A stretch of 64,000 bases of DNA from IMG/VR virus record IMGVR_UViG_3300044625_001067, positions 186,001-250,000 of that record. One strand, given 5' to 3'. The notes under the pieces were generated by a model. It searched no databases. It was not told the DNA's origin and saw only the letters and a list, made by a program, of their open reading frames with translations. The stretch's first letter is position 1, and every line of letters begins with the position of its first letter. Position numbers and translations under genes: made by a program. Positions 5,711 through 35,073 of the stretch are shown piece by piece.

Positions 5711-5798
5711 CTACAGTGACCCCAAAGTTTTAGGACTCGCGGGTCGGATTGCTTCGGCAATCTTTGAAGTCAACTTTACACACAAGGAAACATCTATT

Positions 5799-18997: not shown

Positions 18998-19075
18998 CTA
19001 CCTAGACCTGGTCCGCAGAGGGTAAAATAAAAAGATGGGGTGAAAACACTCCCTGAAATTTTCACAACATCAGAC

Positions 19076-19333
19076 ATGAATAAACTCGACCACTGTTACC
19101 TCGAAGCCCTTTCTGAAGCACTGAAAGGTAACCTTGGAGAGGCTTTAGAACTCCGCAATGAAGCGGATGCGTTAGCATCCGAAGGCTTCTCCTTCTCCGA
19201 AAATTACGGGAATAAATACCCGTTCATTGAAGAGGCTGTAAATACCCTGATTAATTCGTACGAATTCACACGCTGCGTAAAACCGTCCGGTGAAGCGTAC
19301 GGAACAGCGGGGCAGTGTAGAAAAGGAACTGAA
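19076..19333 (+). repeat. Dispersed repeat copy 1 (copy 2 at 32658-32915)
   Basis: Near-identical DNA over ~200 nt (atgaataaactcgaccactg...tacgaattcac), protein similarity continuing to KGTE. Confidence 0.9.
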
Positions 19334-19687
19334 GAAGCTAAACTGGTAAAGGCGACTTCTCCCACCAGGCGAACCAAGGTAGAAAGAGACATGGCTGCCC
19401 AATCCACTCTCAAAAGACTCGCAGCCAAAGGTCCGGATACTTCCGTAAGAAAGCAGGGTAACAGGGTAGTGGTCAGTAAGGGGTCTGAGTTCAAGGCTGT
19501 TCTACACCCCGAGCACCAGACTGCCCTTGGAAAGTTAAAGGAGGGGGAAAGGTTCAAATTTGAGGACGAAAGTGGCACCCATTGGTCGGCGACACGGTCC
19601 GGAAATAGTATACGCTTAGAGGGGGGAGATACAAGGCATGGCAGCAAACCTTACAAAATGTCAATGGGTAGGGACAAACTGATGTGA
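19076..19687 (+). CDS. Hypothetical protein with duplicated N-terminal leader (candidate head-cargo protein)
   Basis: First ~86 aa nearly identical to 32658 ORF; basic C-terminus; motif GGGTAAAA at 19020. Confidence 0.65.
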   Translation: MNKLDHCYLEALSEALKGNLGEALELRNEADALASEGFSFSENYGNKYPFIEEAVNTLINSYEFTRCVKPSGEAYGTAGQCRKGTEEAKLVKATSPTRRTKVERDMAAQSTLKRLAAKGPDTSVRKQGNRVVVSKGSEFKAVLHPEHQTALGKLKEGERFKFEDESGTHWSATRSGNSIRLEGGDTRHGSKPYKMSMGRDKLM

Positions 19688-19725
19688 GGTAGCTTTCGTG
19701 GGGCTCCTGCTTTCCTTGGGCAGCA

Positions 19726-19740
19726 GGGTAAAACCTTGTA
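19726..19740 (+). promoter_or_regulatory. GGGTAAAR-N5-YA putative late promoter
   Basis: GGGTAAAAccttgTA upstream of 19756. Confidence 0.6.
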
Positions 19741-19755
19741 CAAGGAAATAGCCGA

Positions 19756-20835
19756 ATGCCAGTTCCGCAGATAAAGGAGGCCATACTCTCAGCACCAAGT
19801 ACGGTTGTCCTATACTTCGATAGCCCACTTGACACTCGGGTCAGTGTCCCCATAAGTTCTTTCACTGTGAACTACGGCCAGTACGGAGTAGAGACATTCG
19901 TGTACTCCTCGGACACAATGGTATCCCTTGGGCTAGACAGCTGCTTGTCTGCGTGGGACGAGGTATTTGTTTCCTATGAGCCCCCCGTCGCCTTAGCGTC
20001 CTGCATGAGGGGGCCAGTTCCCTCCACAGCCAGCGATGTAGTCAAGAAAAGAAACGCAGTAAGGGGATTTTACCGAGTTTCAGTCAGAAACACACTTACG
20101 CCAAGCGAACAGACAGAAAACTCTCGCAAGGGGTCCAACCTCGGGCAAACCATCGGCGGTTACGGTTACCCACACCAAGATCGCTCAGGTGTTTTAACGC
20201 CAAACAGGTCCGACCCACGAAGTGCGTCGCCCGACGACTTCATTATCGCGTACGGACTCAAAGAGGCCATACAACTTACGAACATTGACGACGCGAGTGC
20301 AAACTCGGTGAATGTTGCCAAGATGCGAATGGCAATCGAGGATGCAAACGCTCTCATAGACTCTTACATTGAGCAGTCAGGGAAAGCGGGAAAGGTCCTA
20401 ATTACGAGCAACCGCCGCCGAACAGCACTAATTATAGCCCGATACTACCTAGATAATGTCCGGCGAAGAGAAGATGTTTTCAAGGACTATGCTGAGGCAC
20501 TGAAGCAACTCGACGCTGAACGAGAAATGACTTCGGTTCGTGCGGGCCACGGTGACTCAGCTATTGATACCAAGGCAGGAATCATGCGCTCCTGGCGTGT
20601 CCCGCAGCGGTACAACGGGGTTTCGGGGAAAGGTTTCGGGGGGTGGAATACAGACATGGCGGGAGACCAGGCTCCGGACTTTCGTGCTGGTTTCGGGGCA
20701 ACGGGGCAAAACAACTCTGAAACTAATTGGATCTCAGCACGAAACTACGAAGACTTAGGTGGGACTCCACAAATTACAGAGCCGAACGACGCAGGCGGCT
20801 ATCGCGTTAACGGCTCTGATACGATCTACCCTTAA
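19756..20835 (+). CDS. Head-tail connector (Mu gp36/DUF1320-like) with N-terminal Ig/SwmB-like domain
   Basis: DFIIAYGLKEAIQLT...AIEDANALIDSY...IARYYL...YAEALKQL; N-terminal VVLYFDSPLD..SSFTVN..VSY beta domain. Confidence 0.7.
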   Translation: MPVPQIKEAILSAPSTVVLYFDSPLDTRVSVPISSFTVNYGQYGVETFVYSSDTMVSLGLDSCLSAWDEVFVSYEPPVALASCMRGPVPSTASDVVKKRNAVRGFYRVSVRNTLTPSEQTENSRKGSNLGQTIGGYGYPHQDRSGVLTPNRSDPRSASPDDFIIAYGLKEAIQLTNIDDASANSVNVAKMRMAIEDANALIDSYIEQSGKAGKVLITSNRRRTALIIARYYLDNVRRREDVFKDYAEALKQLDAEREMTSVRAGHGDSAIDTKAGIMRSWRVPQRYNGVSGKGFGGWNTDMAGDQAPDFRAGFGATGQNNSETNWISARNYEDLGGTPQITEPNDAGGYRVNGSDTIYP

Positions 20836-20847
20836 GTCCTAACCTAA

Positions 20848-22071
20848 ATGGAACTGAATACAATAACGAAAATAGAGCAATTCCTCTGCGACTCTCTTAT
20901 TGCCTCCCCCCTCATACCAATTGGGGTTAATGTATTGCGTTTGGCTGACGCGGTTGAGAATGAGGGCGTTGTAACTCAGACGAACAACATTGTTGTGCGC
21001 TACGAAAGCTCAACAAGCAATGTTAAGAACCGAGTGCCTTTCATATACGAAGACACTCTCAATTTTGAGCTTAACTTTTCGTGCCAAAACTACCTGACGA
21101 GTTCCGGACACGACTTTGCTACGCAACTCCTTATGGGTGCGAAAATCACACTGTCGGGGAGTGCCCCTTCAGGTGCTTACGTGCAAGTTTTGGAACCTTT
21201 TCGATGCTCTACGTCCCAGTTCACAGGCTTAAGCCCGGAGTCTCAGTACACCTACACTCAAAGCTGGTCCGTAACTATAGAGGAAACCCTGCCGTATATA
21301 GCACTCGACCCCTGTGTTCAACGTGGTGATTGCCGCCAAATTTTCCCCACTCGAAATGTCCTAACTTCTTTACCTTTGGCTGGTGTTCTTGATGAAGCAA
21401 CGGGGAGTGTGTATGTGCCATGGTACCCTGAGACGAATCCCCTAGAGGCCGCGTTCACAGACGCACTCGGAGTGCAGTGGAGCGAAGAACTTACGCAGTC
21501 AGGGGATTGGGTCTATGTATGCAGCCCGAGTGAGGTATTCCTCGAAGACCCTCTAAATCAGCCAATCTACTTATTAAGCAATAAGAATTTCACGGCGGAC
21601 GGTCGCTTGGTTGTAACAATTTGGAACGCCACAACAAAGCAGCCCATAAAGGAAGTTTTCTACGTTAACTCCGGGAAAAGGCTTGCTCGTTACGCTGTGG
21701 ATCTTTGGAGGAACACGGTTTCTGGCGCAGCCAAGGGAGGAATAGACCCGCTAAGTGTGAAGGATGCGTCGTGGTCGTCGAGACTCACCTACGGAGAGTT
21801 CGCAATTGTGAGAGGGGCGAACCGAACCCTGTACTCAGACCCCCTAGATCCGAACGGCAAGACGCAAACTTTGATGGGTGGAACACTCGTCGGTGTGAAA
21901 CCTGACACGTTTATTCAAACACCGCAGGGACGGTTCTACTTTGTAGCTCAGTCTCCGCAGGGTAAAGGTTGGTTGATACAAGATTCCTTCGAGCTTGCGT
22001 CGATTAATTCCTTGTGGAAGCTCGGCTGCATTCCTTGCGAAGGCGGGCCAAATCCTCCGAGTCTCTGTTAA
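20848..22071 (+). CDS. Putative tail completion/neck protein with C-terminal extension
   Basis: Follows gp36-like gene; N-terminal ITKIEQFL...IVVRYESS resembles Mu gp37-like proteins. Confidence 0.45.
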   Translation: MELNTITKIEQFLCDSLIASPLIPIGVNVLRLADAVENEGVVTQTNNIVVRYESSTSNVKNRVPFIYEDTLNFELNFSCQNYLTSSGHDFATQLLMGAKITLSGSAPSGAYVQVLEPFRCSTSQFTGLSPESQYTYTQSWSVTIEETLPYIALDPCVQRGDCRQIFPTRNVLTSLPLAGVLDEATGSVYVPWYPETNPLEAAFTDALGVQWSEELTQSGDWVYVCSPSEVFLEDPLNQPIYLLSNKNFTADGRLVVTIWNATTKQPIKEVFYVNSGKRLARYAVDLWRNTVSGAAKGGIDPLSVKDASWSSRLTYGEFAIVRGANRTLYSDPLDPNGKTQTLMGGTLVGVKPDTFIQTPQGRFYFVAQSPQGKGWLIQDSFELASINSLWKLGCIPCEGGPNPPSLC

Positions 22072-22073
22072 GT

Positions 22074-22226
22074 ATGGCAACTCCCGCACAGCTCTGGGCA
22101 CAGTACGACGTTGCTGTTAAGTCCAACAACTCGGCCTTGGCACAGGCCATCCTTAAACAATTGCAAAACTTCCGGAGTTACCCCACTTCAAATACGGGGT
22201 GCTCACGATGCAGAAAAACACTATGA
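22074..22226 (+). CDS. Small hypothetical protein (50 aa, CxxC)
   Basis: ATG 2 nt after upstream stop; ATGA overlap with next gene. Confidence 0.45.
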   Translation: MATPAQLWAQYDVAVKSNNSALAQAILKQLQNFRSYPTSNTGCSRCRKTL

Positions 22227-22498
22227 CAACAACTTCGAACGACAAAATCCTGAGGCAGAAAGAGACCCTTGCCGCAGCAGCATTGCAGGTTGCTGAAGAC
22301 GCTCTTGAGCTACTTCAAGACCACTTGGAGGAGTGCAGCACTCGAGATCTTGTGACTGTGTTCAACTCGGCTGTGAAAGCGCACCGCGAGATTGTGTCGG
22401 ATATTGTGAGTCTGACCGATTCAGAAAGCAAACAGGAGCAGATACTGGCGAAAGAATATAACGGGACACTTACGAAATTGCTGAAAAGTATTGAGTGA
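22223..22498 (+). CDS. Hypothetical helical protein, candidate terminase small subunit
   Basis: Directly upstream of large terminase; helical composition; position only. Confidence 0.4.
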   Translation: MTTTSNDKILRQKETLAAAALQVAEDALELLQDHLEECSTRDLVTVFNSAVKAHREIVSDIVSLTDSESKQEQILAKEYNGTLTKLLKSIE

Positions 22499-22527
22499 GA
22501 GACCCGTAAAACGTGTAACAGTGTAAT

Positions 22528-24291
22528 ATGAACTTTCGCACCCCGTCTATAACGCACGCTTCTCAGCTAGAGGAAAAATCCCGGTGGAGAAAATATACGA
22601 AAGGTATTCGAGAGCTTGAACTTCTTGAAGCACCTCGATCTGTAATTCAGGAGTTCAGGTTTAAGGCTGCCCGAGATTGTTTCCTGGCCTTTTGTGACAT
22701 TATGAAAAATGGGGACTTAAACGTTTCCCCCTTTCACGAGATCATCGCAAGTGCCTTTGAGGATCTTTACGAACGTCGATACAATCGTCTTATTATATCC
22801 TGCCCACCACGTTCAGGGAAGTCAATGCTTTCCACTATGTTTTTAGCGTGGTTGCTCGGAAAAGACGAAAGAACTCAGCACATCTTGGCTTCCTACGGGG
22901 CTTCTTTATCTCAAAAGTTTCACAGAGAAGCTGTCGTAATGATGAAGACCCCTTCATTTAGGAAGGTCTTTCCTGAATTTTCAGGGTTTAACCGTGACTC
23001 GAAATATGACTTAGTCGGGGGTGGTTATGTACTTGCGACGTCCGTTGGAGGTATTCTCACTGGTTTCACGTCTGGAACCATAGACATGGAATCCACGGGT
23101 ATTGGTGCGGCACTAATTGACGACCCCCTGAAATCGTCTGACTCTAAAGCAGCGCTGGACAACTTAGAAAGTTGGTGGGCAGAGCAAATGTCCACACGAA
23201 GGACAAATCACTACGCCCAAGTCATTATAGCAACCCGTTTTCATGAAAAAGACCTTCATGGGGTCTTAATGGACGGTGATGGTTTATATGACCCTGAAGA
23301 TAATCCTTTCGGATGGAGGTGGATAAACATAGCAGGGCTCTGTGAGGACCCTGACAATGATCCTCTAGGTAGAGAGATGGGAGAGAGCCACTGGCCCGAC
23401 AACCCAGCCTTCTCTGTTCCGATGCTTGAGTCCCAGAAAAAGATAATGGGTAGCTTTAAGTTCGCAGCTCTTTACCAAGGGGTTCCTGTATCGGCTGAGG
23501 GACAGATTGTAAAGAATAGCTGGGTGGAGGTGATTGGGGAAGAAGACTGCCCCCCCTTGGACGTTGTATGGTTTGGAGTTGACTGCGCTTTCTCCGAGCG
23601 AGAGAAAGCTGATGAGAGCGCAATATGCGTCGCTGGTATAAACACTCGTAACCCAGATACTGTTTACATTCGTGAGATTGTTAAGGGTAAGTGGGGCTTT
23701 CCTGACTTGATTGACTCGGTAAAGCAGCATTACGCTCTGTATAACGCAAAAGTTCTGTGCATTGAAAAAGCAGCATCGGGGCACTCTCTCATTCAAATGC
23801 TGAAGCGAGAGGCTAAGATACCTATCGAGGAAATGAGGCCGCTGAAGTCAAAGACGACTCGCCTTCAGGCAGTCTGCCCTTTACTCGAAAACCACCGAGT
23901 TATACTGGTGCGGGGCCTGTGGACTGACGCGTTCGTAAAGGAACTAACTTCTTTCCCGTATGTTCGCCACGACGATAGTACTGACGCCATGGTGTGGGCG
24001 CTGACTTACTACTCGCTCAAAATTGACTCCGTTGACCGGGGTATACAAGACTCGATAATTCAGAGTCGAAAATGGGCTGGTGACCTACGCAGACCAATGT
24101 TTCGGGATGGTCACTCTTACGGTGGGCTTTTCGAAGAGCGAAATGTGTCGGTCGGGGGCCGAAGAGCTCCCCGCAGTATGGGCTTCAACGACCCTGATCC
24201 TAAGTCTGCCGAGGTACCTGATAGGGGCATTTTCCGAGGTGGCCGCAGCCGAGGTCTTCGAAGTGTATCCGGCTACGACCTTTTTAATTAA
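22528..24291 (+). CDS. terL: Terminase large subunit
   Basis: Walker A ISCPPRSGKS, Walker B LIDDP, IATRFHEKDL, ALYQG, nuclease GVD..IEK..HDDSTDA. Confidence 0.93.
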   Translation: MNFRTPSITHASQLEEKSRWRKYTKGIRELELLEAPRSVIQEFRFKAARDCFLAFCDIMKNGDLNVSPFHEIIASAFEDLYERRYNRLIISCPPRSGKSMLSTMFLAWLLGKDERTQHILASYGASLSQKFHREAVVMMKTPSFRKVFPEFSGFNRDSKYDLVGGGYVLATSVGGILTGFTSGTIDMESTGIGAALIDDPLKSSDSKAALDNLESWWAEQMSTRRTNHYAQVIIATRFHEKDLHGVLMDGDGLYDPEDNPFGWRWINIAGLCEDPDNDPLGREMGESHWPDNPAFSVPMLESQKKIMGSFKFAALYQGVPVSAEGQIVKNSWVEVIGEEDCPPLDVVWFGVDCAFSEREKADESAICVAGINTRNPDTVYIREIVKGKWGFPDLIDSVKQHYALYNAKVLCIEKAASGHSLIQMLKREAKIPIEEMRPLKSKTTRLQAVCPLLENHRVILVRGLWTDAFVKELTSFPYVRHDDSTDAMVWALTYYSLKIDSVDRGIQDSIIQSRKWAGDLRRPMFRDGHSYGGLFEERNVSVGGRRAPRSMGFNDPDPKSAEVPDRGIFRGGRSRGLRSVSGYDLFN

Positions 24292-24324
24292 CTCGATCCA
24301 AGACAACACAAACACAATCACAGG

Positions 24325-25744
24325 ATGTCACTTAAACACCAAAAAATAACGCACGCTTCTCAACTAGCAGAGCACTCAAGCTGGAGGAGCTACCGACGAA
24401 AACTCCTTGAACTGAAACTTGAGGGGTTTCCTCAAGAGGCTTACGCTAAGGAAAGTGCAAAAAATAGCTTTCTTGCTTTCTGCGATCTTGTCTCCGATGC
24501 AGGAGGTTTCGCACTCGAAAACGCACCGCTCGATGCAAAAGCATACGAAGTGATAGGGTCCGCCTTTGAGGACATTTCCGAAGGAAGGTACCCAATTCTC
24601 CTCGCGTCGATGCCTCCCCGCACAGGGAAAACCACTCTAGGGGTTCACTTGCTGTCCTGGCTCCTTAGCAAAGACCCCATTGCTAACCACTTTGTAACCT
24701 CGTACACACAGAATCTGGCCGCGTCGGTAGTTCACAAGACTAAGCATTTGGTTCAGTCCCCTCCGTTCCGGACGTACTCCTCTGTGGTTCCCCCACTTGC
24801 ATCGTTTCATGTTTTACCAGTCTCCTTTGGGGGGTCTGTGTGCGGGGACTATTACGGTAGCTTATACGAAACGCCAGGCGTATGGCTAATCGACGACTGC
24901 CACGACGGTGTTTCGGACGGAAGTGTCAACGAGAAACAGATACGCGAGATAGGAGACCATTACGTAGGCAAAAATGCAATAGTCGTTCTCGGGTCTCGAA
25001 GAGGTGAGGGAGATATTTTCAGCTACTTTCTGGAAAAGTACGGTGTCTTTGACCCAGTCTCAAACCCGAACGGAGCCGTTCACATTAACTTATCCGCCAT
25101 CATTGAGAGCGAAGAAGAAGCCAAGGTTGATATTCTCGGTAGGAAAGTTGGGCAGGGTATCAATGACGCTAACTCCACATTTAGCCCGAAGAATCTTCAG
25201 GACTTGCGGAAAACAATAGGGGATGTAAAGTTCTCGTGGTTGTACAAAGGGGTGCTCTCCACTGGGTTCGGAGTCTGCTCCGAGGTACCCCCCTCTAGAT
25301 AAGGTCATTATCTCTATTGACCCCTCTTGCTCGCCAGGCAACGCGGATATGACTGGAATTTGTGTGGCTGGATCCACGAAGGAAAAGGACTGTGTGTACG
25401 TTCTCGACGCGTACCAGGCGAATTGGGACTTGGAGACTGTTGGCGTAATTGTTTTTCTAGCCGCTAAAGCCTACAGTGTTACAGAAGTTGTTATCGAGTC
25501 GTCCATGGCGAGTGAGCACTGGAGACAGTACCTAGAGAAGCTAGGTTTACCTGTTCGAGTGAGCAAGGAGAGAGTGGTGGCTAAGGCACTTGCGACCAAT
25601 CTAATGGTAAAGTCGGGGAAAGTAGCATCCAACCCAGATATACACAACGTGTTGTTTAAAAGTTGGGACTGCATTGGATCGTACTCAGATATAATGGATG
25701 CTATTTTGGTTAGCTTCATGGAACTGCTTCCACCTGCTGTTTAA
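24325..25744 (+). pseudogene. Second, divergent terminase large subunit paralog with apparent frameshift at C6 run 25288-25293
   Basis: ITHASQL.E.S.WR.Y shared with terL; MPPRTGKTT, WLIDD; other frame continues PLDKVIISIDPS...ICVAG, VIES, DIMDA; may be intact if the homopolymer is miscalled. Confidence 0.7.
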
Positions 25745-25806
25745 TTCCGGTGTAGATTGCGATTCGCAACCGCACAAAAAGTTTCTATTGTTTCTCAACA
25801 GTTAAA

Positions 25807-26010
25807 ATGGCTATTTCACCAACTGATAAAAACACTGCAATAATGCAGGAGCTACACGGGACTCGTTGTCTCATCACAAGTCCTTCCTCGGACAAGTACC
25901 TTCGTCAAGCGAAGACGCGAAAAGAGTACCCGATTCCCGAAGACTCCTACTCTCGGTGATGTGGCGGGGCCGACGGTTTTGATCTATTCGTAGAAAGAGT
26001 TCACGAGTGA
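25807..26010 (+). CDS. Small hypothetical protein with in-frame TGA at 25957
   Basis: MAISPTDKNT...DSYSR*CGGADGFDLFVERVHE; frame continues past the stop. Confidence 0.4.
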
Positions 26011-26185
26011 GTTGAACGCCACACTTCAGTCAAAAAAAAAGGGGGGGGCCAGCGGGTAAAGTCACTCGTAGGGTTTCCCTTTCACAATAAACTCTACCAT
26101 TCGTTTCGAAAGGGGGAAGGATTATGTAGTCCTGGTTATCAACGAAGAATACACGCTATCCACTGTTGTCAAATCCCCTTATACC

Positions 26186-26908
26186 ATGTTGAAAAGTCGA
26201 GACAAGCGCAAGTCACGTCGCGCTGAAACAGCTCAAACGGTTGAACGTTCCTATGGCCGGGGTATGGATGTCATGCCCTTCTACTCAAAGTCTGACCGCC
26301 AAGAAGATCTTTGGACTTCTTTGAATAAAAATACAGTTACCATAGCTATTGGACCGTCCGGAGTTGGGAAAACTCTTGTGGCCCTGTGGTGGGGTTTGAC
26401 TGAGATTTCAAAGGGTAATATACAGAAAGTTTACTACATTCGAAGTGATGTAGGATGCTCTCATCAAAGAAGTAGGGGTGCCTTGCCTGGAACGCTTGAG
26501 GAAAAGATGAAACCTCTTGTTGGACCAGTATACGACAATTTGGTTGTAATGACTAAGAGTAGGGGGGCTGCTGACTACTTGGTTGATAAGAAAATTGTAG
26601 AGCCCACTCTTCTAGAGGACTTACGGGGAAGATCGCTAAATGAGTGTCTGATTCTTTTTGATGAGGCTCAGAACTCTATGCCCGAAAACGTCAAAACCGT
26701 CATTAGTAGGGTTGGAAAAGATTCAAAAGTTATCATTACAGGGGACACTAGACAAATTGACCTCGATGTGTTTAAACCTGAAAACGGACTCTTAGACTGC
26801 TACCATCGACTTTCCTCCATTAGGGGTGTAGGGAGAGTTAAGTTTGAAAGAGAGGATATTGTAAGAAATGGAATTATAGCTGAAATCTTGGAGGCTTACG
26901 AGGCTTAG
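26186..26908 (+). CDS. phoH: PhoH-like ATPase
   Basis: GPSGVGKT, GALPG..EKM.P, LRGRSL, DEAQN, ITGD..QID, DIVRNG. Confidence 0.92.
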   Translation: MLKSRDKRKSRRAETAQTVERSYGRGMDVMPFYSKSDRQEDLWTSLNKNTVTIAIGPSGVGKTLVALWWGLTEISKGNIQKVYYIRSDVGCSHQRSRGALPGTLEEKMKPLVGPVYDNLVVMTKSRGAADYLVDKKIVEPTLLEDLRGRSLNECLILFDEAQNSMPENVKTVISRVGKDSKVIITGDTRQIDLDVFKPENGLLDCYHRLSSIRGVGRVKFEREDIVRNGIIAEILEAYEA

Positions 26909-26944
26909 TAATTCGTACCTTAGCTAGGTAACACGACTGAGACA

Positions 26945-26969
26945 AGGGGCCGAAAGGCCCCTCTTTTTT
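26945..26969 (+). terminator. Intrinsic terminator
   Basis: AGGGGCC-GAAA-GGCCCCT then CTTTTTT. Confidence 0.85.
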
Positions 26970-27059
26970 CGGGGCAGGGTGGGGTAAAATTCATCATAGC
27001 CAGTAAAACAATAGCACCGTGATTTGTGCCCCCCCAAAGCCCAGCCTTGAGGCAAAACC

Positions 27060-27395
27060 ATGAGGAGAGACACTCGCTTCCCTCGCCCCGACCGCTTGGC
27101 CTTAGAACAAAGCCTGCCACCTGGCTCCCTCAGCCACCCTCAATCCTACGGGGTATGGTCCGTTTTCTTGCAGTGTGACGACCCCTCAGATGTTGCACAC
27201 AAGTTTCGTTCCTACCGCGACAGCAACCTGTGCACAATCCCCCGCGAACAACTCCGAGCAATGCGAGACACCTTGATTCTTGGTATGAGAGAGTCAAACA
27301 AAGCATCAGCAAAGCCACTCAAGGAAAAGCAAAGGGGCCGGCATTACGCCGACTACGACAAAGAATGGGTAGAAAAGCCCCGCAATGGAGCCTAA
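27060..27395 (+). CDS. Hypothetical protein
   Basis: ORF downstream of motif at 26982. Confidence 0.55.
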   Translation: MRRDTRFPRPDRLALEQSLPPGSLSHPQSYGVWSVFLQCDDPSDVAHKFRSYRDSNLCTIPREQLRAMRDTLILGMRESNKASAKPLKEKQRGRHYADYDKEWVEKPRNGA

Positions 27396-27397
27396 CT

Positions 27398-27763
27398 GTG
27401 ATAAAGACCAAAGACAAAATTGAGAAGCTATACCGCGTACCTTGCGGTCCGATGGACATATCCGCCAACGCTATCTGTCGCCGCTCACTTCGAGACCACT
27501 TCGATAAGTTGCTTGATCGTTTAACTCTTGAGGTGAATCCGAATCCTGCTGCCCCGGCGAAGCTACAAAGCGACCTTGAAGTTACCGCAGATGGACGACT
27601 TATTGAAAAGTCTGAAGAGACCCAAGAAGAACGCAAGAGAAAGCTTGTCGAGGAAGGAAAGTTCCGCGCCGATGTCCAGTCCGAGATCAAAAAATACCGA
27701 GAGAACCTCCAAGGTAACGGAAAATTGCTGCAGGATGTTTCAGGCAAGTACGAATCGATCTGA
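27398..27763 (+). CDS. Hypothetical protein
   Basis: GTG start 2 nt after upstream stop within ORF 27230-27763. Confidence 0.5.
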   Translation: MIKTKDKIEKLYRVPCGPMDISANAICRRSLRDHFDKLLDRLTLEVNPNPAAPAKLQSDLEVTADGRLIEKSEETQEERKRKLVEEGKFRADVQSEIKKYRENLQGNGKLLQDVSGKYESI

Positions 27764-27804
27764 GGTAAGCGGAGGGTAAAGTTTAGCAGTCCACAAACCA
27801 TACA

Positions 27805-28410
27805 ATGTCCAACAAAATCAACGGTGACTTCGACACTGACTCGATTGAAGCGTTCAGAGCTGCCTACGCAGCACAAATCCTCGAACCGGAAGACCAAGAG
27901 ACCGACAAATACACGGGCCTTCCAACCAACTTAGTTCTGAACACATCGCCGTGGATTCAGCACACTGGTCTGTGGAAGGCGAACGACGGGTCAAACAAAG
28001 ACTTTCAGGCCAATCAAGTTCTTGTTCCAGGAATTGAAGAACCCGAGAAAGAGCTCTCCGACGAAGAGCTTGAGGAGCTTATTGATCAGCTTCTTGCAGA
28101 GGGCGGCGGCGATGAGCTTTCTGAGGATTCGCTCGAAGATGACGACTACGACGATGACGCTTACTTTGACACAGGGGAAGAGGAGGAGCCGGAGCTTACC
28201 GATGACGAAGTAGAACGGTTAATCGACGAGCTCTTGAGCGAAGAATCCGAGCTGGATGAGTTGGACGAACTGGAAGAACTGGAAGACGACTATGACGAAG
28301 AGCTATCTGACGAGGATATTGACCGCATAGTGGACGAGCTCTTGAGTGAAAGCGAAGACGAACTCTTCGAAGACGACCTTGACTCTGACCTTGACTCTGA
28401 CCTTGACTAA
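27805..28410 (+). CDS. Highly acidic repeat protein
   Basis: Three EL(S/T)D(E/D).(L/V/I)...(I/V)D(E/Q)LL repeats; GACCTTGACTCT tandem at 3' end; motif at 27774. Confidence 0.7.
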   Translation: MSNKINGDFDTDSIEAFRAAYAAQILEPEDQETDKYTGLPTNLVLNTSPWIQHTGLWKANDGSNKDFQANQVLVPGIEEPEKELSDEELEELIDQLLAEGGGDELSEDSLEDDDYDDDAYFDTGEEEEPELTDDEVERLIDELLSEESELDELDELEELEDDYDEELSDEDIDRIVDELLSESEDELFEDDLDSDLDSDLD

Positions 28411-28422
28411 GGGGAACAATCA

Positions 28423-29103
28423 GTGGGTAACCCTAGGAAAAAATGCACAGCAGGAAAGTCTTGCTCGGCAACTTGCATAAGCAAGGGGTTTAAATGCAAG
28501 AAAAAGTTGCCGTCACCAGTTAGCGACAGTCTCACACGTAACAGTGAGAAGTTGTTGCACCTTGGTGAGCATGTTGGGGCCAACGTGACGTCTTGGAAAG
28601 TTGGGAAAGTTGTTGGCCCCCTGGTATCAAAGTACCTGGAAACTCGCTACGGCATACCACCGGAAACCACAGAAAAGCTGTCGGAAACTATTGTTCAAGC
28701 GGTGGTTGCCACGGGACTTCACTCTCGACATTTAAGGTCGAGTGAGGACTTTGTAAGAGACCTACTCACAGAAGCTTCTGCCGCGTTCCTGGGGAAAAGT
28801 GCCCACACAGGTGTGGAAAGTTTCCTAACCCACCAGGAAAGTCGCGAGATTGTCCAACAAGCTTTGCCCCTACTTGCAGGAAAGTTCACCGGAATTGGTG
28901 CAGCTTTTGCAGGGTCAAAACTTCCCAAAGTGGCCCAAATTTCGGGCGCCATATCACGAAAGTACAACTCCGACCTTTTGAAGCTACAGAGGCTATTCAG
29001 AAGATCTGAAGCTTCATTTTCTGAGCAAACCAACCAGGTAACCTCAGCTAAGCTTCTCGGAGACCTTTCTCTTCTCTCGGTTTTACTGTCCTTGAACGGG
29101 TAA
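28423..29103 (+). CDS. Hypothetical protein with N-terminal CxxGKSCxxTCIxxxxxC motif
   Basis: KKCTAGKSCSATCISKGFKC shared with kinase at 33641. Confidence 0.6.
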   Translation: MGNPRKKCTAGKSCSATCISKGFKCKKKLPSPVSDSLTRNSEKLLHLGEHVGANVTSWKVGKVVGPLVSKYLETRYGIPPETTEKLSETIVQAVVATGLHSRHLRSSEDFVRDLLTEASAAFLGKSAHTGVESFLTHQESREIVQQALPLLAGKFTGIGAAFAGSKLPKVAQISGAISRKYNSDLLKLQRLFRRSEASFSEQTNQVTSAKLLGDLSLLSVLLSLNG

Positions 29104-29126
29104 AACTGTTTACTGGCGAAATAAGC

Positions 29127-29447
29127 ATGACTCAGTTCAACGAGAGAGCTCTTCTTATTCGAGCATTAGCGGGTATATTCCTGATTCAGTTTCTAATTGT
29201 AGGGTATCAAACGTGGTCCTGCCAATCCTATGCAGAACGTGACAAAGACTCCACAAAAGTAACCCTCATCTGTAACAATGCGACCAACACATTTAACGAG
29301 ACCGGGAAGCTAGCACTCACTACAATTTTAGCACTTTTGGTCCCTTCTTCAGGGCAAAATGTTTCAGAAATAATTTCAACTGTGCGAGGGGGCCGCAAGC
29401 GCAAGACTAAAGAAGATGATGGCCTGGACGGAGAAAGTAAGGTCTAA
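29127..29447 (+). CDS. Small membrane protein (two hydrophobic segments; holin-like candidate)
   Basis: LLIRALAGIFLIQFLIVGY and LALTTILALLV; basic C-terminal patch. Confidence 0.5.
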   Translation: MTQFNERALLIRALAGIFLIQFLIVGYQTWSCQSYAERDKDSTKVTLICNNATNTFNETGKLALTTILALLVPSSGQNVSEIISTVRGGRKRKTKEDDGLDGESKV

Positions 29448-29526
29448 CGTTCCCGTGGGGAAGTAAACCCTGGAGTCCGTTTCTGAGCGAAAAGAGGGTA
29501 AAGTTAAGTATCAACGTAAGACCCCT

Positions 29527-30321
29527 ATGTACGGTGCTAACTTAGACTTTTCGTCTGTAACCCTGCCGGGAGTTGGCGGTTCCATAAATGCGGCTACAGC
29601 TATTTCCACAGACAAACTTGAGGAAATGAACCGCACAGGAAAAAAGTGGCGAACTGACAAAGATGGTAATATGTCTTTTCACAACGAAGCCCTCTTAGAA
29701 GCCAATAAGGCTAGCCGCCAAAAGAAAGAGAATCTGGTTAATCGTGACCGAGACGCTCACGCGGATGGAAAAGCTGCTATGAAAGAGATTTTCGGTCGCA
29801 AGCGGGCGAGAATGGAGGCATTTCGAGAAATAAAGAGAAAAGAGTATAACTTTGCCGATGACACTGAGCTAATGTCTATGCCTCAGCCCTTCTCACAAGC
29901 GACTTGCAAGGGAGTGGGCAAATGCAAATGTGACTCTTGCAAAGCAGCAGCGAAAAGCGACGCAGACTTTCGAGAGTGGTCCGCGAGTAAAAGGCAGAAG
30001 TTGCAGTCCGGAGAGGAGCGGGGAGAGTTTGCTGGGCCCGGTATGTCCTTTCCCGTCGCAAGCGCTCAAGATGTGTCAGCAGCGTGGTCTTCCGTGGGCA
30101 GGGCAGCGAACCCTCGCAAAATTATGTCAGAGATTATTCGCATTGCTAAGAAATACGGTTGGGAGTCGGGTCTCCCCCAAACGGTGAAAGATCGAATGGG
30201 ACAAGGGGAGTCAGGCTTGCCTTCCCCGGACTTCCGCGAAGGGGCACCGAATGCAAGAAAGAGTTCGAGGAAAGCAGCTAGAGCAGCGGCCGAAGTTGGC
30301 AAGTCAAGGTTGCCGGAGTAA
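29527..30321 (+). CDS. Hypothetical protein, candidate head-associated
   Basis: Basic; FAGPGMSFPV...DVSAAWSSVGRA.NP...IIRIAKKYG domain; DFRE sites. Confidence 0.6.
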   Translation: MYGANLDFSSVTLPGVGGSINAATAISTDKLEEMNRTGKKWRTDKDGNMSFHNEALLEANKASRQKKENLVNRDRDAHADGKAAMKEIFGRKRARMEAFREIKRKEYNFADDTELMSMPQPFSQATCKGVGKCKCDSCKAAAKSDADFREWSASKRQKLQSGEERGEFAGPGMSFPVASAQDVSAAWSSVGRAANPRKIMSEIIRIAKKYGWESGLPQTVKDRMGQGESGLPSPDFREGAPNARKSSRKAARAAAEVGKSRLPE

Positions 30322-30323
30322 AC

Positions 30324-30695
30324 ATGGGACTTTTTGAAATACCACTCATAATCTGCGGCTGGATTTTCACAGCTGGTCTTGCGGGTGTCGGTGGCACCTT
30401 TATGATTCAAGGTAAGAACGAGAAAAGAGTTCAGTACCTGAGAAACAACGCAGACCAAAAGATAGAACGTCTTATTGAGGAAAACGACAAAAGAATTAAC
30501 GCTCTGATTGCAGCGAATACTGTCCAGAACGAGAATGTCCTTTCCCACATTAAGAATGTTGAGAAAGCTCTTAATGACATGAGAGCGGAACTTCCTGAGA
30601 AGTACACACTGAAGACAGACCACAACCGTCTTGTCGACAAGGTGGAAGAGCTTTCTATGCAGTTTTACAGGCATAGGGAGAACGCTAATAGCTAG
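30324..30695 (+). CDS. Membrane-anchored coiled-coil protein
   Basis: N-terminal hydrophobic helix followed by heptad pattern. Confidence 0.6.
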   Translation: MGLFEIPLIICGWIFTAGLAGVGGTFMIQGKNEKRVQYLRNNADQKIERLIEENDKRINALIAANTVQNENVLSHIKNVEKALNDMRAELPEKYTLKTDHNRLVDKVEELSMQFYRHRENANS

Positions 30696-30728
30696 GGGGT
30701 AAAGTTAGGTAGTTAACCACTTACAGAA

Positions 30729-31109
30729 ATGAGTCACTGGGGATCCTTTTCACCGGAAGCTTACAGAGCTTACAAGTACGGGGTTGAAAACCCCAGCAAC
30801 TTCATGGGAGTTGCTCCAGCATTTGAGAAAGAGCCAGGGAGGGACCCTGACACCTTCTTTATGGGTGAGGACGACGAGGATGACTACGACTCCGACTCTG
30901 AATACGAAGACGCTGCCGAAGACGACAGGGAAGTCGAACCGAACGGCAGCATGGCCATTTCTCAGTTGCGATCTATGAGGGACAATATTGAAACTATACT
31001 GGAACTGGTTGGGCCTTACACGAATCTGAGTCCGTGGATGGCGGCAAAGTTGGCTGAGGCTGAGAACAGCATGACCTCAGTTGCCGACGCGTTGCAATAC
31101 GAAGATTGA
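30729..31109 (+). CDS. Hypothetical acidic protein
   Basis: Motif at 30697; WGSFS N-terminal leader. Confidence 0.6.
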   Translation: MSHWGSFSPEAYRAYKYGVENPSNFMGVAPAFEKEPGRDPDTFFMGEDDEDDYDSDSEYEDAAEDDREVEPNGSMAISQLRSMRDNIETILELVGPYTNLSPWMAAKLAEAENSMTSVADALQYED

Positions 31110-31113
31110 GACA

Positions 31114-31455
31114 ATGTGGGGATCCTTTGACAATTCATCCTACGCTTCTTTTCGAGAGGCTGCACTGGAAAAGTATGCAGAACAGGTAGACAAAAGCTCT
31201 CTCGACTGTAACGACCCCCGCGCCACACCGAGTCACCCAACAAAATCTCACATTGTAAAGTCGTGCTACCCTGGCGCACCAAAAGGGGGCAAACTGATTC
31301 GATTCGGACAACAAGGCGTGAAAGGGTCGCCAAAGAAAGATGGTGAGTCAGAGTCTTATAAAGCCAGACGGCAGTCATTTAAAGCGAGGCATGCTGCTAA
31401 TATTGCGAAGGGGAAGTCTTCTGGTAGTTATTGGGCCAATTTGGAAAAATGGTAA
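31114..31455 (+). CDS. Hypothetical basic phage protein
   Basis: HPTKSHIV...LIRFGQQG...ARRQSFKARH...YWA; WGSFD leader. Confidence 0.65.
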   Translation: MWGSFDNSSYASFREAALEKYAEQVDKSSLDCNDPRATPSHPTKSHIVKSCYPGAPKGGKLIRFGQQGVKGSPKKDGESESYKARRQSFKARHAANIAKGKSSGSYWANLEKW

Positions 31456-31581
31456 GTTAAACTAAAGAATTCTCCCTGGACATATGGGGAATGTAACTTC
31501 TGTAGAGGTGAGACCTAATGCGACAAAATACCTCAAACCATGTGATGTGACGGGGTAAAACAACTTAGTTGAGCCACGGGA

Positions 31582-32082
31582 ATGATAGGAGACTTTAGCG
31601 TACCCAACGTAGATCACCTCACAGAGGGAGTGCATTACCATGTTGTAGACTGGGACTTTGCGGCATGTGAACCCGACGAGAAGATGGTATACGGTATATG
31701 TAGGAAAGTTGGGGGGACCGGGGAAAAAGATTTCGACACGTCAAAAAGAAGCAAGCAAGAAGAGCAGCTAGGCAACGAAGCCCAAAAGCAAGGTGCCGGG
31801 GCGTCAACAAAAGAGCAAGCGTCCGCAGCCAATAAAAAGGCTTTTACGGTTGAGGGGAAGAAGTTCGGGTGGGCCATCAAGGGAGGCAAGCCAGTAATCG
31901 TAGCCTGGGGATCTGTTGCAGGAGAGGCAAAGGTGGGCCCGAAGCAAAGAGTTTCACCCCAGCCGCAGTCCCCCGCAGTTCAAACGAACAGGATGGAAGG
32001 GCTTAAGAAAGCCTTAGCGAGTCAAACCACCGAGAGTGGGCGCCAGGCCATACAGAATCAAATTCGTCAGCTCGGCGGGTGA
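31582..32082 (+). CDS. Hypothetical protein
   Basis: Motif at 31553; IGDFS leader, WDFAAC then basic domain. Confidence 0.6.
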   Translation: MIGDFSVPNVDHLTEGVHYHVVDWDFAACEPDEKMVYGICRKVGGTGEKDFDTSKRSKQEEQLGNEAQKQGAGASTKEQASAANKKAFTVEGKKFGWAIKGGKPVIVAWGSVAGEAKVGPKQRVSPQPQSPAVQTNRMEGLKKALASQTTESGRQAIQNQIRQLGG

Positions 32083-32145
32083 GACAACAGTAGTGAAGGG
32101 TAAAGTTATGTACAACAAGAATCTCTTTTCTCAAGAAGGGAACCC

Positions 32146-32580
32146 ATGAATCCTAACTTCCCCGAGAACGAACTTCAGCTCGAAGGTTTCTCCCACATTC
32201 CAACGGATTACTACCGGGGAACTGTGATGGAACCCTCAGCCACCTCGACTCTCCGCCCCAGCTTCGGGGAGTACGGCGCTATGGGCGAGCGGCACGAAGC
32301 GATATCGAGAGCAATTGCTGACTTGGGCTTTGCCATGAAACTCTCTCGACAGCGTGGAGCGTTTCAAGAACTTCAAAGGCAGATGGCTGCGACAAAGAAA
32401 CTTGTGAAAGAGCGCGAGGAAATTGACGGCAAAATGGCAACGCTTGACCTGGCCCGAAAGAACACTGACGACCACAATATTGCTGCTGGTATGGAAACTT
32501 CCTACTCAGAGCGGATAGACTCTGTGAGCACCCGTATTAACCGTCTCCAAGAGCTGCTATCCAACTTTAGCGACTTTTAG
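32146..32580 (+). CDS. Hypothetical coiled-coil protein
   Basis: Motif at 32098. Confidence 0.6.
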   Translation: MNPNFPENELQLEGFSHIPTDYYRGTVMEPSATSTLRPSFGEYGAMGERHEAISRAIADLGFAMKLSRQRGAFQELQRQMAATKKLVKEREEIDGKMATLDLARKNTDDHNIAAGMETSYSERIDSVSTRINRLQELLSNFSDF

Positions 32581-32657
32581 TCCTTATACTCGCCCTACGG
32601 AAACCAACCGTTAAACGATAAGATGTACTCGCTTCCACAATTTTCTCACTGTCAACC

Positions 32658-33644
32658 ATGAACAAACTCGACCATTGTTACCTCGAAGCCCTTTCAGAAG
32701 CACTGAAAGGTAACTTAGGCGAAGCTTTAGAACTCCGCAACGAAGCGGATGCGTTAGCATCCGAAGGTTTCTCCTTCTCTGAGGACTACGGGAGTAAATA
32801 CCCATTCATTGAAGAAGCTGTAAACACTTTACTTGATTCGTACGAATTCACTCGATGCGTCCGAGCCGACGGCTCGGCCTATGGTACACGCGGGAAGTGT
32901 AAGAAGGGCACAGAGGCTGGAGCGGCTGACCAGAGGGGTGTAGGTAAGAAGGGTTCCATTAAGGAAAGAAAGGTAGCACGACTTTACGAAGCCCTTAAAG
33001 AAAAGAAACTTACGAGTAACGCGACCTAGCGATTAATGAGACAGATGCTTGACACTCCAGAAGTTAAGAGCCAGTTTTCAAGTCTAGAAAAGAAAGGCGA
33101 CGTGGAAGGGGCGAGAGCCCTTTACTCCAAGATTGAAGCTGAGGCTGGAAAAAGGGCGAGTGCAGGGGAAGGGAGACTGGCCAAGGGCGACAGTAGGACA
33201 CCTGCCAGTGCGGACAGGGCTCGTGCGTCAGAGAAAGCAGAAAGCAGAAAGAGTCCGATGAAGTTAGGGAAAGAACAGCCACAGGCCGGGAAAGACATAT
33301 CACCACGAAGAAGAAAAACTACAGCAGAGTATAAGGCAGTAGCGGTACAACTATTTGATCTTTATAAAATTGCTCAGCGAAAAGAGCGAGAAGCGGAAAA
33401 GGCACTAAAAAGCGTTGAGAAAGAAACCAAAGGCGACAATAGTCGTGAAGCGAGGCTAAAACGCTCTACTGCAGAGAAAGCTTTAATGAAGGCGTACTCA
33501 AGTGGAGAAAGAGCTATGAAGGCTGAACTCAAAGCAAACTCATCCTATATGAAATCACTCAAGAAGGACGTACGAGCTAAGATGAGTCCCCAACAAAAGG
33601 CCGCTGAAAAGGAGATTGATAAAATAATACAGGAACGAGGTTGA
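32658..33644 (+). CDS. Leader-bearing basic protein, interrupted by a single in-frame TAG at 33027 (ORFs 32658-33029 and 33036-33644)
   Basis: N-terminus duplicates 19076 ORF; NAT*RLMRQ continues in the same frame. Confidence 0.55.
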
Positions 33645-34912
33645 GTCTAGTGAAACGCTGCACCAAGGGAAAGAGCTGTGGAGGTACCTGCATTAGCCGC
33701 GAGGCTAAGTGCAGAGCCTCCTTGACCCCCAAACTATCCCACCAAGTAGAAAACTTACAGGGATCATTAGCAGGCAAAGTTGCTAAGAGTGGCGAGACAA
33801 ACCCGCTGGTCAAGGACCTTATTGAGGCGTTAGCGTCCAACTCAAAGGTCAGGGTGGGTAATGACTTCCCATCGTTAAAGCGGGAGGCAGAGCGCCAGCT
33901 TGCTGAGCTGCGCAGTAAAGAGTATATGACGGACGAGGAAATAAATAGGGCCACGAAAGTTGAAAAGGCACTCTTTGACACATGGGCCAAGCACACCAGG
34001 GCGGATCGCCCAGCTATTCAAGAACGTCAAAATGCACTCGAATTCGACTCCGAGTTTACACCAACCCTAAAGTTAGGGGGTAGCTACGACTGGAAACAGT
34101 CGTACGAATCAGGATCAAAGGGGTTAGGATCAGGTTTGTACGGAGCGGTAATTGCATCCAAACCACCCCCGTCCGTAGTCGTGAAAAGGGGGGAGGTGGG
34201 GGAAAATGAAGTGAGAATTCTTGAGAAATTAAGTGGAAAGGATATCACCCCCAGGCTAATCTCGGCTGAGATGAATAAATCTGCTGAGTTCAACAACGCT
34301 GGGTACTACCCTGGAAGAATAGCAATGTCCCGTGTAAGGGGTAAGCCGGCTGAAGACTTTGAATCCTACGAAAGCCCAGTCGGAAGCACAACTGTGGGAG
34401 ACTCTTACTACGCTCTACGAAAGAAGCTCCATGAGCAAGGTGTTGCCCATAATGACGCCCACGTAGGAAACGTAATTATCGATGACAAGGGGAAAGCACG
34501 TTTTGTTGACTTCGGTGTTTCACAGGATGACCCTCGTGCAGCTCTCTCAGAGGCCATTGGAGTTTTATCGGTGAGGTACTTACTACCCCCTGGTGCAATG
34601 CTCAGAAAGCCACTCAATGAAAACTCAGGGGATTTTCAGGCACGAGACAACAAGCAGTTTTACTTGCCACCATCCACTACAGTTACTCCTAAGGGAACTA
34701 CCCCCAAAACGAACCTTGGGAAGATTATACGAAACCGAATCAAAGTTTACTCCGAGATGGAAAAGCTTGGTCTTAACAAAGACGATATTGCTGAGGTGGT
34801 GACCCACAGTTTAGACCAACCACTTAGCTCTTACAACAAAGGTGCTTGGGGTAAGATCGGCAAAGACGACGCTGCAAGGCTTATTTCCATACTTTACGAA
34901 GGGGTTAGTTAA
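33641..34912 (+). CDS. Protein kinase-like protein with N-terminal Cys4 motif
   Basis: GLGSGLYGAV (Gly loop), VVVK, HNDAHVGNV (catalytic loop), VDFG. Confidence 0.85.
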   Translation: MSLVKRCTKGKSCGGTCISREAKCRASLTPKLSHQVENLQGSLAGKVAKSGETNPLVKDLIEALASNSKVRVGNDFPSLKREAERQLAELRSKEYMTDEEINRATKVEKALFDTWAKHTRADRPAIQERQNALEFDSEFTPTLKLGGSYDWKQSYESGSKGLGSGLYGAVIASKPPPSVVVKRGEVGENEVRILEKLSGKDITPRLISAEMNKSAEFNNAGYYPGRIAMSRVRGKPAEDFESYESPVGSTTVGDSYYALRKKLHEQGVAHNDAHVGNVIIDDKGKARFVDFGVSQDDPRAALSEAIGVLSVRYLLPPGAMLRKPLNENSGDFQARDNKQFYLPPSTTVTPKGTTPKTNLGKIIRNRIKVYSEMEKLGLNKDDIAEVVTHSLDQPLSSYNKGAWGKIGKDDAARLISILYEGVS

Positions 34913-35073
34913 TGGACAAAGACCAAAAGTACCTCGACCTCATGTCACTCTACAAAAGGGTAAGGAGAAACCCAAGCGAAAGAGATCGTGCTCGGGGAAT
35001 TCTTAACACGGCAATAGAGCTTGGGAAACGCGGAGTGAGCTCTGAGGCGAAAGAGGCAGTGAGGTACATCTAA
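34912..35073 (+). CDS. Small protein (53 aa) coupled to kinase; candidate inhibitor/immunity protein
   Basis: TAATG overlap; MDKDQKYLDLMSLYKRVRR...EAVRYI; absent from ORF track (under 60 aa). Confidence 0.5.
   Translation: MDKDQKYLDLMSLYKRVRRNPSERDRARGILNTAIELGKRGVSSEAKEAVRYI

Follow-up and report, generated by a model that had tools for sequence, protein, structure and literature searches.

Why does one phage encode a series of small proteins that begin alike and end in unrelated ways, and what might the shared beginnings do? The question is raised by a 64,000-nucleotide stretch of DNA, bases 186001 to 250000 of the IMG/VR virus record IMGVR_UViG_3300044625_001067 (hereafter the window). 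The record is a single contig of 277,244 bp from a tailed jumbo phage, a 277-kilobase myovirus of lake water, and the window lies in its virion-gene half. A reading of the letters of this DNA alone (the original prediction) had proposed that genes in the window attach interchangeable N-terminal tags to diverse C-terminal payloads, so that the payloads are loaded into the phage head and delivered with the DNA. We found a real pattern, well beyond chance and far more extensive than first noted: at least 17 proteins of this genome bear a tag, 14 of them with a leader that contains two cysteines and 3 with a head that contains four. A signal for capsid loading and processing is the best-supported explanation of the tag, and we would give it an even chance of being right.

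Two N-terminal modules and their payloads

Genes are named here by the window position at which they start, and positions on the whole contig are given as genome positions. Four genes of the window illustrate the two modules:

19076-19687, plus strand: leader-family gene 1, with the 86-residue "MNKLDH" variant (a GFSFSE motif and the two-cysteine core), then a basic tail and a C-terminal domain without assignment
32658-33029, plus strand: leader-family gene 2, with the same 86-residue module as 19076 and a short basic tail
28423-29103, plus strand: four-cysteine head and a helical C-terminal domain, with F-[SA]-E about 25 residues before the hydrophobic C-terminus, a motif kept in the 28423 family
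33641-34912, plus strand: four-cysteine head and a predicted protein kinase of the APH/ABC1/RIO-like type, with HND..N and DFG motifs

The 86-residue modules of 19076 and 32658, which had been described as near-identical and followed by unrelated C-termini, are indeed 81% identical over 258 nucleotides, with 28 changes in synonymous codons and 20 in non-synonymous ones. The likeness ends at the ATG and after ..KGTE, and the flanks are only 33 to 42% identical, which is the random level. A third copy of the module lies outside the window, at genome position 167692. The module ends in a sharply conserved core of 30 residues (..[YF][DE]FTRCV..G..YG..G.C.KG) that occurs near the N-terminus in 14 genes of this genome. 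Each of the 14 scores 63 to 75 bits (74 for 19076 and 69 for 32658), and there are no intermediate scores.

In 10 of the 14 core proteins, the true N-terminus is M-x(1-3)-G-[SYN]-F-[ST], after which come a helix, D-F-[SA]-E-G, and the core. Because these 10 proteins show both, the 86-residue module and a G-[SD]-F-[SD] start that had been listed separately, on four other small proteins, are the two ends of one leader. The tag in its usual form consists of five elements: Met-x-Gly-Ser-Phe-Ser; an amphipathic helix; D-F-[SA]-E-G-E-T; a basic two-cysteine beta-hairpin with the consensus Y-D-F-T-R-C..G..Y-G..G-x-C-[RK]-K-G; and a linker rich in Lys, Ala, and Glu. The first four make up the leader of about 58 residues, of which the "MNKLDH" module is an extended form. 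An AlphaFold model of the leader consists of a helix and then three short strands, with a predicted local distance difference test score (pLDDT) of 71. The best Foldseek match of this model to the PDB had an E value of only 2, and searches of the ESM Atlas with the leader and with 28423 gave scores of 0.69 to 0.75, which is below the level of a lead. The cysteine-containing segments had been called linkers, but they are conserved modules that appear to fold.

Behind the leaders of this genome are an ADP-ribosyltransferase (PF03496), kinases, a protein with a HEIGH motif, and many domains without assignment, most of them basic. The ADP-ribosyltransferase (genome 99204-100169, outside the window) scores 51.3 bits against a cut-off of 23.4 and has the YRG, GSYS, and ENE motifs. 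The payload with HExxH is probably a peptidase, judging from that motif.

The four-cysteine head, C-x2-G-K-S-C-x3-C-[IV]-x5-6-C, was correctly predicted for 28423 and 33641. It also heads a third kinase (genome 135906-137066) and four proteins (gp106, gp113, gp163, and gp174) of Synechococcus phage S-CBWM1, which is the closest isolate (60% identity in the terminase and 61% in the portal). The N-terminus of 28423 matches gp174, and gp163 and gp113 share the architecture of 33641. Across related viral loci, we found the head in 38 open reading frames (ORFs) from 28 of 76 loci. Its four cysteines, candidate ligands of a zinc-binding knuckle or ribbon, are invariant in 32 sequences, and 12 of these 32 proteins are kinases according to Pfam. 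The head of 33641 has no match in Pfam, and a word-index search with it gave just one match, which was near-identical. Nor did we find a description of either cysteine motif in surveys of polyvalent proteins and of jumbo phages. As a side point, the annotated start of gp113, a RIO-like kinase, appears to be too late, with the four-cysteine motif in frame just upstream (L019 18420-18464).

The two modules can stand in for each other. By sequence, 33641 belongs to the protein kinase superfamily: it matches PF01636 with 23.9 bits (the cut-off is 23.2) and contains HND..GN and DFG. It is a paralogue of the kinase at genome position 259632 (32% identity over 295 residues, E = 9e-44), which carries the two-cysteine leader. 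Thus, the same kinase payload occurs behind both modules, and the tags are interchangeable. In one related case, the four-cysteine head comes directly after F-A-E-G, in place of the two-cysteine core.

To follow the leader into relatives, as had been suggested, we made a profile from the 14 leaders and searched 1.84 billion representative proteins with it. At E ≤ 1e-3, 890 clusters matched, of which 396 also passed E ≤ 1e-10, and the C-termini behind the leader are unrelated. Among the 150 best matches, which are proteins of 75 to 699 amino acids, the match runs from residue 1 to about residue 58 in most; the C-termini of these 150 include 7 ADP-ribosyltransferases, 3 or 4 kinases, DUF6496, a cytidylyltransferase-like domain, and others, and most are unassigned. 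No Pfam family covers the leader, and the proteins are labelled hypothetical in all sources. Among 50,697 records of phage isolates, only S-CBWM1 encodes the leader (gp165). In IMG/VR, it is encoded by 139 stretches; a single 20-kilobase locus can have as many as 9 copies, and there are arrays of 5 to 9 family genes in tandem. The leader did not turn up in 185,579 species genomes of bacteria and archaea when these were scanned for one exact pattern of 9 residues.

The leader is N-terminal in most relatives and strongly conserved. For 88 of 100 full-length matches in related viral loci, there is a Met within 5 residues of the expected start, and nine residues are invariant in 118 leaders (clusters at ≤50% identity). 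Since the paralogues are only 81 to 88% identical in DNA and most of the changes are synonymous, it is the peptide that is kept. Relatives also have fusions at the junction between F-S-E and the core, which join counterparts of 32146 and 33036, or of 30729 and a tail resembling the one at genome 261686; in the present genome, these genes stand apart.

Two other observations concern leader genes. In the lake metatranscriptome X21, contigs over the "MNKLDH" module (window 32625-32916) have a word depth of 186 to 507, as compared to 13 to 25 alongside, and one of these contigs runs on into the upstream region of the 19076 copy. The depth could reflect high expression of that gene or a sum over paralogues. 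Outside the window, at genome 261304-261621, a DUF6496-like ORF ends in a truncated two-cysteine core (E = 0.0024), and the next leader gene follows just after. It may be a broken or shuffled copy, because relatives fuse DUF6496 to the full core.

Motifs in common with virion genes

Two short motifs link the tagged proteins to the virion genes, one upstream of the genes and one within the leader:

27774-27780, plus strand: one instance of the promoter-like motif GGGTAAA; further ones start at 19020, 19726, 29098, 29496, 30697, 31553, and 32098
1291-3870, plus strand: prohead protease/scaffold, 859 amino acids, Mu gpI-like (PF10123, phrog_976), with five F-[SA]-E motifs
3646-3666, plus strand: D-F-A-E-G-E-T, the same motif as in the leaders, within the conserved C-terminal scaffold block of the protease

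GGGT[AG]A[AG] is present 24 to 60 nucleotides upstream of 12 of the 17 family genes and of just 35 of the 507 other ORFs. If we consider distances of 27 to 36 nucleotides, the counts are 9 of 17 and 22 of 507, and the non-family genes with the motif include those for the sheath, the protease, the adaptor, and a fibre. Family genes that are dispersed in the non-structural half of the genome still have it. Across related loci, the motif precedes 44 of 60 distinct leader genes, with a peak at 29 to 33 nucleotides from the ATG, versus 23% of other ORFs. We infer that it is a late promoter because it is shared with virion genes. Of the eight genes that the original prediction named, many of which were said to have late-type promoters of their own, four have the motif (19076, where it lies 56 nucleotides upstream at 19020, and 27805, 30729, and 31582), and the other four, including 32658, do not.

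The second motif joins the leader to the prohead protease/scaffold. In the C-terminal domain of the protease, the most conserved block is T-L-D-F-A-E-G-E-T (T-L-E-F-S-E-G-E-T in S-CBWM1), and F-[SA]-E-G-E-[TS] is invariant in 52 to 56 distinct orthologues. An alignment with hhalign places leader columns 9 to 32 on scaffold columns 55 to 77 (P = 0.007). When the genome is searched for the leader with HMMER, the protease ranks next after the family and two small proteins. Another invariant F-x-E ends the protease domain, a conserved Q-F-S-E lies further along, and the F-S-F-S-E of the "MNKLDH" variant is the same as the site that ends the protease domain. None of the other non-family ORFs, of which there are 507 with the protease, has as many F[SA]E motifs as the protease does: its 859 residues contain 5, against a background of 0.45 per 1000 residues. 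F-[SA]-E is also found at the domain junctions of fused relatives as well as near the C-terminus of the 28423 family. We rejected another candidate, an F-x-E in a gp171-like head protein, as only the Phe is conserved among its orthologues.

The T4 prohead protease cuts after Glu in a short motif, trims itself, and strips N-terminal propeptides from internal proteins. phiKZ-like prohead proteases also cut after Glu in short motifs, trim themselves, and remove the N-terminal propeptides of ejection proteins (PMC10052503). By analogy to these enzymes, F-x-E is probably the recognition site of the protease encoded here, and the leader proteins are probably its substrates, which would place them inside proheads. 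The protease is thus the likely recognition partner of the leaders. A sequence search of the PDB with the protease profile gave no match.

The protease/scaffold is 859 amino acids long here and 480 in S-CBWM1, with an extra acidic middle that contains an internal repeat of about 90 residues; metagenomic orthologues mostly have 710 to 1130 amino acids. Also, a 219-residue protein outside the window (genome 2364-3023) has three F[SA]E motifs, a count exceeded among non-family proteins only by the protease, and GGGTAAA lies 35 nucleotides upstream of its gene. This could be another protein of the head or of its cargo.

Cassette neighbours and the rest of the genome

Near the tagged genes, the window encodes these small proteins:

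30729-31109, plus strand: acidic protein of 126 amino acids that starts with MSHWGSFS and resembles the N-terminal part of the leader without the core; promoter-like motif 32 nucleotides upstream
31114-31455, plus strand: protein of 113 amino acids that starts with MWGSFD, followed by a phrog_7595 domain; a weak case (profile E = 0.46 to 0.96)
27805-28410, plus strand: very acidic repeat protein with GDFD near its N-terminus; a weak leader case with no profile score; promoter-like motif 31 nucleotides upstream
31582-32082, plus strand: protein of 166 amino acids that starts with MIGDFS; the weakest leader case, with no profile score and an orthologue that starts with MYNPFSSF; promoter-like motif 29 nucleotides upstream
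32146-32580, plus strand: protein of 144 amino acids that ends in ..NFSDF; in a relative, this is the N-terminal part of a core-containing protein
33036-33644, plus strand: basic protein of 202 amino acids whose C-terminal end matches the end of a fused protein in the related locus L083

The first four of these had been predicted to share a G-[SD]-F-[SD] leader. The motif is real, as the core proteins show, but these four proteins lack the core, and the case for them is uneven. The best is 30729, which is the top non-family match in the genome to a profile of the leader helix (E = 0.055 to 0.18); 31114 comes behind it. Orthologues of both keep MxWGSF, with MWGSF in the L015 orthologue of 31114. 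For 27805 and 31582, the case is weak, as the orthologues vary at the motif (GGDFD or SYFD for 27805 and PFSSF for 31582). We also considered G-[SD]-F-[SD] as a signal at the nucleotide level and rejected this, as the codons vary from gene to gene. In L083, an orthologue of 30729 is fused to FSEG, the two-cysteine core, and a basic tail that resembles the one at genome 261686. At 11517-12362 of the same locus, an orthologue of 32146, the core, and a tail like that of 33036 are joined through the F-S-E/core junction. The extremely acidic protein encoded at 27805-28410 has three E-E-L-I-D-x-L-L-[AS]-E repeats, and its orthologues are conserved across the phage group.

The cassette lies between PhoH and a fibre protein of 1590 amino acids and is conserved: it is also present in S-CBWM1 and in metagenomic relatives. 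Comparing the region to the 50,697 phage records with megablast gave no match. Searching ten of the small proteins against Pfam and PHROGs matched just the kinase and phrog_7595 and covered no tag. DNA of this phage is present in metagenomes of lake water, and the region is also found, as contigs, in lake RNA libraries. The genome also encodes a portal, the Mu gpI-like prohead protease, a major head protein, tube and baseplate proteins, a Mu Gp36-like adaptor, the large terminase, PhoH, and giant fibre-like proteins.

We noticed three other features of the genome. The gene for the major head protein is in at least three pieces (window 7031-7273, 8435-8494, and 8794-9483), and this region (5794-9483) contains five matches to group I introns in Rfam and two homing endonuclease genes (6257-6973 and 7724-8374). 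Directly after the real large terminase gene (TerL; 22528-24291) is a second, diverged terminase-like gene that seems to be split into two ORFs (window 24325-25302 and 25349-25744). Finally, a palindromic element of the type GGGGGTAAACCGCCC has at least 10 copies genome-wide (for example, at 80624 in window numbering, which is genome 266624, and at genome 13046, 29037, 75174, and 123307). It could act as a terminator or be a repeat element.

Candidate roles and known systems

If the tag is a signal for capsid loading and processing, then the tagged proteins would be expressed late, and the tag would carry them into the assembling prohead. There, the Mu-like protease would recognise F-x-E and probably cut after it; the protease/scaffold bears the same motif itself. 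The processed payloads would remain in the head and enter the host together with the DNA. Loading into the head is supported, indirectly, by the promoter-like motif that is shared with structural genes, by the match to the protease motif, and by gp174 of S-CBWM1, which is encoded between head genes, has the four-cysteine motif, and is labelled "virion structural protein". A broader version, in which this is a widespread and undescribed system of freshwater and estuarine myoviruses, falls a little short of an even chance. In that version, the tag would be bipartite, copying F-[SA]-E-G-E-T of the protease/scaffold and adding the cysteine hairpin; up to 17 enzymes would be loaded, trimmed, and injected as a first strike; and recombination at the tag would bring in new payloads.

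Several observations weigh against capsid loading. In S-CBWM1, gp165, which has the leader, and the kinases are labelled hypothetical protein or kinase rather than structural. The match between leader and scaffold is short and was noticed post hoc (HMMER E of about 1 and an hhalign probability of 5%). The enrichment of F[SA]E within the family is partly circular because the motif belongs to the leader. The model of the leader is only moderately confident and has no fold match. Lastly, the two-cysteine core can also be internal, and it occurs twice per chain in two related loci (L052 and L091), with a linker and a domain for each copy; a pure N-terminal address would not need this.

Perhaps the tagged proteins are not packaged at all and act late inside the cell, with the tag as a docking or regulatory module that binds a host hub or keeps the payload inactive until it is cut; the likeness to the protease motif would then reflect activation in the cytoplasm or chance. 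Kinases and ADP-ribosyltransferases do also work inside cells, as do ModA and ModB of T4 and the T7 kinase (PMC5512222). Just one cysteine-headed protein of S-CBWM1 is labelled as virion, while gp165 and three kinases are not. We consider this unlikely, as enzymes that remodel the host should be most useful early, yet these stand behind the promoter-like motif of virion genes. Furthermore, the genes lie in the structural module, like that of T4 Alt, and prohead proteases are normally active only in proheads.

Charge and repetition suggest something else: the basic cysteine hairpin and the Lys-rich linker could bind DNA or RNA, so that the payloads act on or travel with the chromosome of the phage or the host, irrespective of any packaging by a protein-protein address. 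The core has a net charge of about +4, the following 50 residues have a median of +3, and the rest of the proteins averages +6.4 per 100 residues. A nucleic-acid anchor would also suit an internal or repeated core with its own linker and domain, and the internal proteins of T4 are basic too. But several members have acidic or neutral tails, even though the proteins are basic on the whole, and neither Pfam nor Foldseek against the PDB identified a known DNA-binding fold. Such an anchor would also leave the extreme N-terminal M-x-G-S-F-S, the helix, and the motif of the protease/scaffold unexplained, and we think it quite improbable. Least credible, and very improbable, is that the module serves chiefly for recombination or is left over from duplication, with 5' DNA conserved to shuffle C-termini and a peptide that has no function. 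The tandem arrays and the fusions and fissions of relatives exactly at the F-S-E/core junction are what this would produce. It does not explain the mostly synonymous divergence of the paralogues or the nine invariant residues, and a family may diversify through recombination even if this is not what it is for.

A role of the tag in loading and processing would explain hundreds of "hypothetical" proteins from lake and estuary viromes together, and it would mean that phages with Mu-like heads reached the strategy of T4 and phiKZ with different parts. The kinases, ADP-ribosyltransferases, and peptidases may then be enzymes for the takeover of picocyanobacteria-like hosts during the first seconds after infection. 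Being compact and having a defined protease motif, such a tag might also be used to bring foreign proteins into phage heads.

The parallel to T4 that the original prediction drew stands as an analogy. The capsid-targeting sequence of T4 (on IPI to IPIII and Alt, with a hypervariable IP locus) is likewise a short N-terminal tag common to unrelated proteins, many of which are basic, from a polymorphic multi-copy family in which many genes have their own late promoter (here, a putative one). Where T4 gp21 would cut, at L/I-x-E, there is a hydrophobic-x-Glu motif here. In its parts, the parallel fails: the leader does not resemble the consensus of the T4 tag; it has about 58 residues instead of about 10, with a folded cysteine hairpin and a core that can be internal; and the head is Mu-like (a PF10123 protease and a Mu Gp36 adaptor), with a protease that is not of the gp21 type. 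T4 Alt, which is packaged and injected (PMC5512222), has the same type of payload, an ADP-ribosyltransferase.

The ejection or inner-body proteins of phiKZ-like jumbo phages, such as SPN3US and 201phi2-1, are also paralogous head proteins, and their N-terminal propeptides contain several copies of a protease motif. In SPN3US, the enzyme that removes the propeptides cleaves after Glu and shortens itself at the C-terminus (PMC10052503), and cleavage of the leaders here would be analogous. In contrast, the motif there is (A/S/G)-X-E, whereas here it is F-[SA]-E, with Phe at P3. The protease there is of the S80 type rather than PF10123, the proteases and the phage lineages are unrelated, and the payloads here are recognisable enzymes with a tag that is much better conserved.

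Polyvalent proteins and MuF-anchored polymorphic toxins (Iyer et al. 2017, PMC5512222) have similar domains (ADP-ribosyltransferases, kinases, and metallopeptidases) and are predicted to be borne by the capsid and to enter with the DNA. However, those are single giant chains of 2 to 15 domains or have a MuF anchor, whereas here many genes each encode one payload behind a small tag. Pfam identified no MuF or LPD domain and at most one payload domain per protein. The cargo-loading peptides of encapsulins are short terminal peptides that send varied cargo inside a shell with the HK97 fold, but encapsulins are cellular compartments without a protease or delivery, and the peptides have no sequence relation to the leader. 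On this comparison, the tag would work like the capsid-targeting sequences of T4 and the propeptides of the phiKZ type while belonging to neither, as its sequence, its length, its cysteine module, and the protease family all differ.

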